The notes below the pieces were generated by a model. The model saw nothing but the letters and a program-made list of their open reading frames with translations, ran no database searches and was not told where the DNA came from. A stretch of DNA of 64,000 bases from Orbicella franksi (Eukaryota): positions 19,840,001 through 19,904,000 of the forward strand of contig OZ116703.1 in assembly GCA_964199315.1 (NCBI GenBank), written 5' to 3'. This document shows positions 1,297-4,500 of this stretch, in pieces; positions within the stretch are counted from its first letter, which is position 1; every line of letters begins with the position of its first letter. The position numbers were made by a program, and so were the translations under genes.

Positions 1297-1545
1297 ATGG
1301 ATGACATAATCCAGGGTGAAGAGCCTCAGGGTTTGTTCTCGAAGCGTTCATCGTCGAATATTCTCTCCGATCCGAGAATTTTAGCTCACTTGCGGATCGT
1401 GGCGGAGGAGGCGCAAAGCTCCGATAAGGACCACGAACAAGATGAGGAGTCCGAGCTACAGAACACGAAACGAGAGCTTGGACTTAAGATAGCGGCTTAC
1501 AATAAAGGAAACCAACATGGCGCATTCCGACTGATATTGAAGGAG
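1297..1545 (+). CDS. RADIL: RADIL-like exon 1 (N-terminus including the afadin-like helix RELGLKIAAYN)
   Basis: ATG at 1297 in the 1276 ORF; donor GAG|GTGCG at 1546, phase 0. A possible acceptor at 1272 means an upstream exon cannot be excluded. Confidence 0.7.
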
Positions 1546-4500
1546 GTGCGTTGCGAGCTGAACGTTGTCACGAACGATGTATATTGGCGAAGGAATGTGT
1601 GCTTATATCTTAACAATATATAATAATCGTAAATGTGTAGTACACTATTTTGCTCGTGTCTGGCTTGTATATACACCAATAAGTACTTAAAATCTGGCCG
1701 TGAAAATCGAGTTACTGTAATGATCAGGTAACTTTTGAGATTAATTCACTCCGTGGTTGACATTTTACGCATCGAAGAATCCTATTCAAGTCAAAGTGTC
1801 ATTGGCCTACATGTGTTAGGCTTGAACGAAGCTAAAATTGCATTTCCGATAAATCGTATTAGACCTGGAACATAAAAGGCGTTCGGAATTGCTTGCATGT
1901 GACGCGCGCGGCCTTTAGAACACTTAATTGATGATGTGTTCTTTCACTTTCAGGATTTAGGCTTCGAAGGAGCTTTACGATTCTACTTTGAAGACGGCAA
2001 AGAAGAACTGACAAAGGCTCTGCGCCTGACAAACAAAACACTGGTCTCTGAGCTGTTGCCAACGCTGATTGAAAAGTTCAAGCCTGATTTGGTAAACTCT
2101 GCGGTCGAGAAAAAAGCTAAACTGTACGAAGTTTATGAAGAAGGTAACAATTAACCTAAAACTACCAACGCTCATTGCTAGGCTGCATATCGAACAAACA
2201 TTATGAAAGCGTTGTGTTCGTTCAAGTATTTTTTCAAGATTTACATTTAGTACATTCCAGTTTACAGGATAGAAATCAAAATACTTGCACGTGATATTTT
2301 ACTTTATGGCAGTGGAGAGGTGCGAATATTTCGAAGCTTCTAATTCGGCCAGCCGTGATTGATATTTTTTTATTCGATTTTAACCACAACTTTATAATGC
2401 CAATGATTGTTTTGCGTAAAGTTTGTAGTGTTTACATTGTGGGCCATTCCTGACATAGCAACGTTGACAATCTTTATTATAACTCCTGTGACTCGAACAC
2501 GGAAGGGGTAATTTTCAATTGCTAGTTCAAAAACTTTGCATACAACTTTCAATTCACAGTATAGCACGGAAGATCTATTCAAAAGTGCGGTCAGTGAACT
2601 AAGAATGGCTATCATTGAACGGTAATTGAAACTTGATGAGGCGACTAATAGAGTACCATTAATAAATAGCAATGTTCGAAAGCATTTAATTGGCTTCCTG
2701 AGGAGCGTGCACTCTGCATTGTACATTTTTCTCATCTTACGCAAGCTTCAATTCTAGTACAGATCATCGCATTCTAAACACTCTTACGAATTCTTCGCAA
2801 TAAAGACACATTGGAGGGAAATTGCAGAGGTCAAGGTTTTACAGTTCACTGATAAGCTGGAGATTTACAGGATTTTGTTCATGCTTAAGAACATCAGTAC
2901 GTGGAGATGATAAAATTGATTTATAATAAGTCTATAATTTACTGTCTCGTAGAGAACTGCTCAGTTCCAAAAGTAAGTTTCTAGTTTTCTCTCCTTGTAT
3001 TTCCTGTTTGCAAAAAAAGGAATAATAGCAGTAACGGTGAAATGAAAAACTCATTCTCATTGTTTGTAGTGGGATTACAGCATTGTGAAGTGGTGTCTGC
3101 ACATCAGATCTCTTACATCTATGAAATATTATTACCAAGTGACTAATAGGTTTTTATGACAGAGTTGTTTACAAAACATGTTAGATGTACAAGACAAACA
3201 TCAAACTCCTGGCTGTATTCCTTTATCAATAAATTCCAATATACACAGGATTTCCCAAGAGGGTTGAACATATGATTTGTGCTTATAGATCACCATTGTC
3301 AATAAGACAGTTCATTTATAAGGACAAAGAGGATTGTCTGCTAGCTAATGGTCCTAAGTAATGAAAGTATAGTCAAGTAAAATCGGGTAATCAGAAGGGA
3401 GAATAATAATTTCATTGCTTGAGCTTGAGACAGATGACTCCTGTATTGATTTTTACTCTGTAGCAGGCAAAGCATTAATCTCTGGCGAGAGTCTTGAATT
3501 TGTACGGCTTGCATCCTTCATGTGTCTTGAGAAGCTTGACTAATTATAATCTGTGAAGTACATAATGCTCTTAGGAGACATGAAATTTTGCAGCCATTAA
3601 CCCTTTCACCCTATAAGTGCTAAAGTTCAAAACTGAAAAAATCCCTAATCTCATTTATCAGAATAATGAGGAATACATAATGGCATATGAAAGCAGTTAC
3701 TCAATAGCTTTCATTCAAATGGTAACACATTCAACAAGGATGATCCACAGATGTAAAAGTTGGAATTATATTTTCCTTGTAGGGGATAAGGAATACACGT
3801 CTGTAGTGTCACAAAAAAGTGCATGTATTTTTCAATAGGTCTCATCTGTCGGTTAGAAATACAAGCGCAGATATAAATTTAGAAGTGCATTAGTTGATGT
3901 GAGGTTATTAATAAGTTTGACTTGATTTCATTTTTTCAATTCTCTTATAGATGAAATTTGTTTAGACCCTTCAGATGCCCCTCTTGAAATTGCACTAAAT
4001 GCCAAAAAGCTTCCAAGATTTGTTTTGCGTTTGGATTACAAAAATTCTCCACAGACGTCTGTAATATCAAATGGTGAAAGTGTCATAAACAAGACATCAT
4101 TGCCTAATGGAACAGCCTTGAGCAATCGTGCTACAACCCCCAGCATTCCATCTCCAAGTCCATCAAAGGCTAGCACACACACTGCTGGTAGTGACAACAG
4201 CTCCACTGGCAGCTCTGCAGGGCAATCACACTTGAGGAATGAGAGCCCAGTTCCTGGCAGCAAGCTATTTACAAAGTCGAAAACCCCACCACCAGTTCAC
4301 AGTGCGATAAATGACAAAATGCCATCGTCATCGAAAAATGACAAGAAGAGGAACTTTTTCAGTTCACCACGAAGTGCTTTTGGGATGTTTTTTGATGGAG
4401 CTGGAAATCAGTCTGATCAGAGTTCCCATGCTGCAAACAAAATGGCTCGGGCAAAGCACAAAAGGAAAGGATCTTTGGGCCGTCTGAGAATAAAGAAGAA

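Follow-up and report, generated by a model that had tools for sequence, protein, structure and literature searches.

The window analyzed here, a stretch of 64,000 nucleotides (nt) from the coral Orbicella franksi (assembly GCA_964199315.1, contig OZ116703.1, forward-strand positions 19,840,001 to 19,904,000), contains at positions 1297-13797 (+) a gene of 15 coding exons and 1505 amino acids (aa) that is the coral's ordinary, expressed RADIL orthologue. The encoded domains follow in the order N-terminal helix, RA1, RA2, FHA, DIL, and terminal PDZ. We conclude that this gene is very probably the single RADIL/RASIP1 orthologue of the coral, encoding a scaffold protein of the Rap/Ras-effector type, and that it has kept the ancestral aN-RA1-RA2-FHA-DIL-PDZ order that it shares with its older paralogue, afadin. 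More broadly, we consider it likely that RADIL is an ancient animal gene rather than a vertebrate invention, that its ancestral form carried the full N-terminus of afadin (RA1 with its helix extension, followed by RA2) and may read two Ras-family GTPase inputs, and that vertebrates, perhaps also molluscs, cut the RA domains to one, in vertebrates ahead of the divergence of RADIL and RASIP1; helix-extended RA domains would then occur in a third family, in addition to AF6 and RASSF.

The coral gene belongs to the RADIL family

Sequence comparisons place the gene with RADIL through its FHA-then-DIL order and its C-terminal RADIL-type PDZ, the latter excluding RASIP1. Pfam, which was run on single exons, recognized RA2 (4547-4879; E 2e-15), FHA (5201-5449; E 1.4e-6), and DIL (E 1.7e-18), and gave RA1, which is split across exons, a weak match (E 0.011). 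Among PDB structures, RA2 (window 4505-4912) matched the RA domain of human RADIL (3ec8) at 1.8e-32, Rasip1 (5kho) at 3e-22, and afadin RA2 (1wxa) at 5e-7, and the motifs LKVFG, YKSV, and ALERY are common to the coral gene, human RADIL, and Rasip1. The PDZ, searched as its 95%-identical copy from the coral Oculina, matched RADIL (1um1, KIAA1849) at 2.2e-31, compared to about 1e-10 for afadin PDZ domains, which scored no better than unrelated PDZ domains. In the DIL region, identity amounts to 62% with Saccoglossus RADIL, 34-49% with vertebrate RADIL, and 41-44% with RASIP1, compared to 29% over 94 aa (E 0.007) with the coral's own afadin. For exon 3, identity with vertebrate RADIL is 32-36%. 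These results bear out the initial annotation, made by a model from the sequence alone, in its view of RA2, DIL, and PDZ as RADIL-like.

The likeness to RADIL (human FLJ10324/KIAA1849) and RASIP1 thus comprises the RA match and the FHA-DIL order, with the PDZ at the extreme C-terminus as in RADIL. Relative to vertebrate RADIL, the coral protein is longer (1505 aa compared to about 1075 aa) and contains in addition the helix and RA1 (aa 1-175) and a Ser/Lys/Pro-rich linker of 160 aa, encoded by exon 3, between RA1 and the RADIL-type RA2. With afadin (AF6, Canoe) it shares the module order aN-RA1-RA2-FHA-DIL-PDZ, but in RA2, DIL, and PDZ its resemblance to afadin is only distant, and it has no proline-rich or F-actin-binding tail. 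The absence of an afadin-type C-terminal tail, which the initial annotation had also proposed, follows from the spliced model, where the stop codon (13795-13797, after ..ITASSC) lies 10 aa past the PDZ.

RA1 is an afadin-like, helix-extended RA domain

The proposal that the N-terminal helix and RA1 resemble those of afadin was supported by sequence and structure searches alike. Exon 2 (1954..2143), which encodes the RA1 core, gave one significant match in PDB, to afadin RA1 (6amb_B, E 2.4e-6), and a profile of seven invertebrate RADIL N-termini matched afadin RA1 at 2.4e-12 and the next RA domain at 9e-4. The AlphaFold (AF2) model that we used is that of the Oculina N-terminus, not of the exact coral sequence; it covers residues 1-185, is 96.6% identical to the coral gene over aa 1-175, and has a mean predicted local distance difference test score (pLDDT) of 76. 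In this model, a long helix (residues 26-71, corresponding to about nt 1372-1509 in exon 1) is followed by a b-b-a-b-b-a-b fold. Foldseek ranked NORE1A-Ras first (3ddc_B, E 2e-8, 136 aligned columns, helix included) and afadin RA1-HRAS second (6amb_B, 36% identity, root-mean-square deviation 2.0 Å), the latter with the highest TM-score (0.86). RASSF5/NORE1A therefore shares with the modelled coral-type N-terminus the helix-extended RA fold, but it belongs to an unrelated protein family with 21% identity, and coral RADIL has no SARAH or C1 domain. A helix of the aN type has been described as common only to AF6 and classical RASSF effectors (PMC5653649). Taken together, the sequence matches and the predicted fold identify RA1 with its N-terminal helix as a domain of the afadin-RA1-like, helix-extended RA type.

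Residues with roles assigned in AF6 (K58 and L27/F28; PMC5653649) were located in the coral protein. The b2 Lys (Lys104, counterpart of afadin K58, in the motif LTKALRL at nt 2008-2028 of exon 2) is kept in the coral and hardly varies among 18 RADIL proteins, and the RFYF strand of RA1 is mostly conserved across phyla. In the Leu-Phe motif after aN, the Phe (Phe77) is invariant in RADIL RA1, and the Leu is replaced by Ala76 in the coral. A second GTPase site at RADIL RA1 is thus plausible, as a prediction from these residues and the model. By analogy with human RADIL and RASIP1, RA2 would bind Rap1-GTP (human RADIL and Rasip1 are both Rap1 effectors; PMC4733052), the helix-extended RA1 would probably bind a second Ras-family GTPase in the manner of afadin and RASSF5, and the PDZ would then recruit partners to membranes or junctions.

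It is possible, although we think it rather unlikely, that RA1 has been kept for another purpose and does not bind a GTPase, acting instead as a structural, dimerizing, or autoinhibitory module; the helix-less form of afadin RA1 does dimerize. Such a role would be consistent with the loss of Leu from the Leu-Phe motif that contacts switch II, with the ability of vertebrates, and apparently molluscs, to manage without RA1, and with the weak Ras binding of afadin RA1 itself (PMC5653649). By contrast, conservation of the b2 Lys and of most of the RFYF strand across phyla, and the best matches of the modelled fold, which are two Ras-bound RA domains, argue for GTPase binding.

RADIL with two RA domains is widespread outside vertebrates

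The spread of the N-terminal module was determined by BLASTP and hidden Markov model (HMM) searches of the N-terminal 175 aa against every RADIL-like protein retrieved. The helix and RA1 are complete in RADIL of all four cnidarian classes sampled, which were represented by the stony corals Oculina, Acropora, and Montipora, an anemone, an octocoral, the scyphozoan Sanderia, and the hydrozoan Clytia. They are likewise present in deuterostomes (three hemichordates, amphioxus, the tunicate Clavelina, starfish, and crinoids) and in protostomes (the brachiopod Lingula and the annelids Owenia and Paralvinella), and the identity of the module to that of the coral ranges from 96.6% down to 31% among these carriers. 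In the same searches, helix and RA1 were not detected in any sampled vertebrate RADIL, RADIL-like, or RASIP1 protein, including those of lamprey and hagfish, in agreement with the earlier statement that vertebrate RADIL and RASIP1 have a single RA domain. They were also not detected by BLASTP or HMM in eight mollusc models, Lineus, or Capitella. The RADIL model of S. purpuratus begins inside the RA1 tail, which suggests that its 5' end was missed. The special status that the initial annotation had implied for the coral gene therefore does not survive at the database level: in RefSeq models, RADIL with two RA domains is the norm outside vertebrates, and the coral gene is not special. This is the situation in which, by the initial annotation's own account, the novelty disappears.

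Shorter RefSeq isoforms of non-vertebrate RADIL were also observed, in Branchiostoma lanceolatum (named RASIP1-like, with no PDZ match recorded) and in Montipora (isoform X2, 1220 aa). Natural short isoforms of this kind may mimic the RADIL/RASIP1 split of vertebrates.

Coral RADIL and coral afadin share the intron layout around RA1

DIL occurs at three loci in the coral genome, of which that on contig C3 is afadin. When the genome was searched with the invertebrate-RADIL RA1 profile, only one locus was found besides the gene described here, and it lies on the same contig C3, where the afadin gene occupies 17246156-17256394 (-) with RA1, RA2, FHA, and DIL present. Since a comparison of the RA1 exon of this gene (exon 2) with human afadin RA1 gave E 1e-22, the C3 gene is the true afadin. 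Coral RADIL and coral afadin are 35% identical in RA1 and 23% identical in RA2-FHA.

The intron comparison that the initial annotation had suggested showed that the coral afadin introns around RA1 have the same place and phase as those of coral RADIL. In RADIL, exon 1 ends ..AFRLILKE, and exon 2 begins DLGFEGALRFYFED, is 190 nt long in phase 0/1, and ends a few residues past LYEV. In afadin, exon 1 ends ..IFEISEPNE, and exon 2 begins DLEYRGVMRFFFQD, is 193 nt long in phase 0/1, and likewise ends a few residues past LYEV. In both genes, intron 1 lies just before DLE[YF], intron 2 is in phase 1, and one large exon 3 encodes the final part of RA1 together with the linker, RA2, and FHA. The layout published for AF6 corresponds in position and phase as well: in human AF6 and in Trichoplax, exon 1 encodes the helix and exons 2-3 what remains of RA1; the MLL fusion of AF6 begins at residue 36 (PMC5653649). 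The identical intron positions and phases, together with the low sequence identity, suggest that the two genes arose by an old whole-gene duplication; a recent exon transfer would not account for them. As a separate observation, coral afadin exon 1 is 36 aa long and consists of the aN helix, and intron 1 measures only about 134 bp; the intron between exons 1 and 2 of afadin is 5.6 kb in Trichoplax and 37 kb in human (PMC5653649).

Trees and the direction of change

The trees contain one afadin only, the coral's own, and their rooting is weak. No afadin was present among the 120 matches listed by the whole-length Lingula RADIL search and by the profile that included coral afadin exons, which were RADIL matches throughout, and the representative search listed none either. 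In the RA2-FHA tree, the coral gene falls inside the cnidarian clade (support 100/99), the one-RA proteins of vertebrates make up a clade (89/99) nested among sequences that carry RA1, and the branch leading to coral afadin is very long. In the RA1 tree, within-phylum groups were recovered, and coral afadin lies outside all RADIL RA1 sequences, with a branch length of 3.3 changes per site. The RA2-FHA tree assigns the coral gene to a cnidarian clade within the RADIL set, far from afadin, and both trees fix the deep order of branches weakly.

The initial annotation had offered two origins for the two-RA layout, retention from the afadin/RADIL ancestor or a later regain by shuffling. The intron positions and phases shared with coral afadin and the spread over several phyla favor retention. 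The afadin/RADIL duplication would then predate the cnidarian-bilaterian split, and the ancestor of both genes would have had two RA domains. RA1 would have been lost in the vertebrate stem, after the branching of tunicates and before the split of RADIL and RASIP1; its loss in molluscs too is probable at most.

Several points weigh against this reading of the gene and its history. Coral RADIL RA1 keeps only the Phe, and not the Leu, of the afadin Leu-Phe motif. The RFY strand motif is missing from RA1 of crinoids, so GTPase binding may not be what constrains the domain in every lineage. The fold model of RA1 is that of the Oculina orthologue and not of the exact coral sequence. The single afadin in the trees leaves a weak root and a weak deep branch order. 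The absence of RA1 from mollusc, nemertean, and urchin models could reflect missed 5' exons. Finally, the later exons of the gene model were set by homology.

The regain of RA1, by shuffling of afadin exons 1-2 into a one-RA RADIL in corals or cnidarians, would account for afadin RA1 being the closest solved relative of RADIL RA1 and for intron positions equal to those of afadin. We consider it very improbable, for the same N-terminus, at 35-48% identity, occurs in RADIL proteins from hemichordates, amphioxus, a tunicate, echinoderms, a brachiopod, and annelids. Moreover, RA1 of coral RADIL is only 35% identical to that of coral afadin, yet coral afadin RA1 still matches its human counterpart at E 1e-22, and in the RA1 tree coral afadin stands outside all RADIL RA1 sequences, at the end of its long branch.

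Still harder to credit is that the gene is the coral's afadin itself or a tail-less afadin duplicate. The RA1-RA2-FHA-DIL-PDZ order is that of afadin, but the true afadin sits on contig C3, RA2, DIL, and PDZ match RADIL far better than afadin, and the protein ends right past the PDZ.

Gene model, splicing, and expression

PolyA RNA-seq reads with the same species label, from two runs, were mapped on window positions 1001-7000. Coding exon 1 (1297..1545, +; aa 1-83) opens with an ATG, has an in-frame stop upstream at 1243-1245, and ends in a GT donor; it encodes the conserved N-terminal motif GLF..KRSS.N.LSDPR.L.HL and the aN helix and ends ..GAFRLILKE. Coding exon 2 (1954..2143, +; 190 nt, phase 0 in and 1 out) is bounded by AG and GT and encodes the RA1 core from DLGFEGALRFYFED to LYEVYEE. 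Coding exon 3 (3951..5833, +; aa 147-774) is directly preceded by AG and encodes the last strands of RA1, the linker, RA2, and FHA. With their GT..AG introns removed, these exons form a continuous reading frame and yield the peptides quoted in the initial annotation, whose two proposed joints were spanned by spliced reads: 15 at 1545/1954 (six in one run and nine in the other) and 25 at 2143/3951. Read depth in this mapping was zero over 2201-3800 of the long intron 2. The end that had been set for the feature at 4040 has to be revised, as it is merely where RA1 stops (at about nt 4036, ..PRFVLRLD), and exon 3 continues to 5833 and holds RA2 and FHA. An origin of exons 1-2 from another transcript, with the join an artefact of annotation or assembly, has nothing in its favor beyond the long 1.8-kb intron and can be dismissed, given the spliced reads at both joints, those at 1545/1954 from two runs, and the full-length transcript contigs of related corals that encode the same fusion.

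Coding exon 4 (6291..6325, +) is a micro-exon of 35 nt located after the FHA exon and ahead of those for DIL, with spliced reads on both sides (5833/6291 and 6325/6887), and coding exon 5 (6887..7133, +) starts the DIL-containing region. Exons 1-5 were set by reads, and exons 6-15 by homology to the Oculina protein XP_078347345.1 and GT..AG sites only. The first part of DIL is encoded by exon 6 (7544..7942, +), where the Pfam match starts at about 7706, and DIL ends in exon 7 (8048..8198, +), at about 8054-8128. Exons 8-11 (9371-9508, 9631-9679, 10097-10287, and 10799-11101, +) encode the DIL-to-PDZ region, which is poorly conserved and probably disordered. Exons 12-15 (11440-11882, 12428-12493, 13247-13320, and 13698-13797, +) encode the PDZ, which starts at about 11820 (VFVVELEK) in exon 12, and the C-terminus. 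The complete 1505-aa model is 88% identical to XP_078347345.1, the NCBI RADIL-like protein of Oculina patagonica, and full-length transcript-derived proteins of related corals (1510-1513 aa) have the same N-terminus.

A minor alternative donor at 1727 is joined to exon 2 by three reads in one run, compared to six for the main joint there. This form was rejected as a second coding isoform, because a stop codon at 1621-1623 interrupts its extension (1546-1727) and no Met lies in frame in exon 2; the transcript is non-productive or a 5' variant, and not the main form. RNA and assembly differ at 4219, 4260, and 5563 in nearly all reads of both runs, and also at 4135, 4729, and 4732; these mismatches look allelic or strain-derived rather than like editing. 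Two RADIL introns contain stop-free stretches (9815-10039 and 12733-12978, +) with the similar strings ..RKTRAGKSRDYRDVIVFEKLR.. and ..SKTQAGKYHVYSDRIIFGKLRF.., which are probably copies of a dispersed repeat inserted in both introns.

Other genes in the window

Downstream of RADIL, the window contains three intronless genes for G-protein-coupled receptors (GPCRs) of the rhodopsin family at 35974-36873 (-), 45935-46879 (-), and 61540-62577 (+), with 7tm_1 matches of E 1e-29 to 1e-40. They form a small cluster, in which a further open reading frame at 51314-52075 (-) is a candidate fourth member. A single open frame of 1358 aa at 21098-25174 (-), with no Pfam match and located in a stretch of strong AT skew (-0.35), is probably a gene for a low-complexity protein.

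Significance

In a 2024 publication, RADIL and Rasip are termed "vertebrate paralogs" of afadin (PMC11006394), "RASIP" is one of the Ras effectors that Smith et al. give as conserved in Trichoplax (PMC5653649), and a zebrafish study compared vertebrate sequences only (PMC8380458). We found no description of two RA domains in non-vertebrate RADIL in the open-access literature; the two-RA state is visible in RefSeq models, yet apparently has not been discussed. For the coral genome, the gene is a routine orthologue, already predicted by NCBI in sister corals. For the family, the data indicate that the afadin/RADIL split is older than the cnidarian-bilaterian ancestor, that the original RADIL had two RA domains, and that the one-RA forms of vertebrates are reduced. 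This result is small, but it should be useful to the fields of Ras/Rap effectors and cell junctions, where the vertebrate studies that we consulted deal with a single RA domain. It enlarges the small set of helix-extended RA domains, and it points to Nematostella, Clytia, amphioxus, and Ciona-like tunicates as models for asking what RA1 adds to RADIL.

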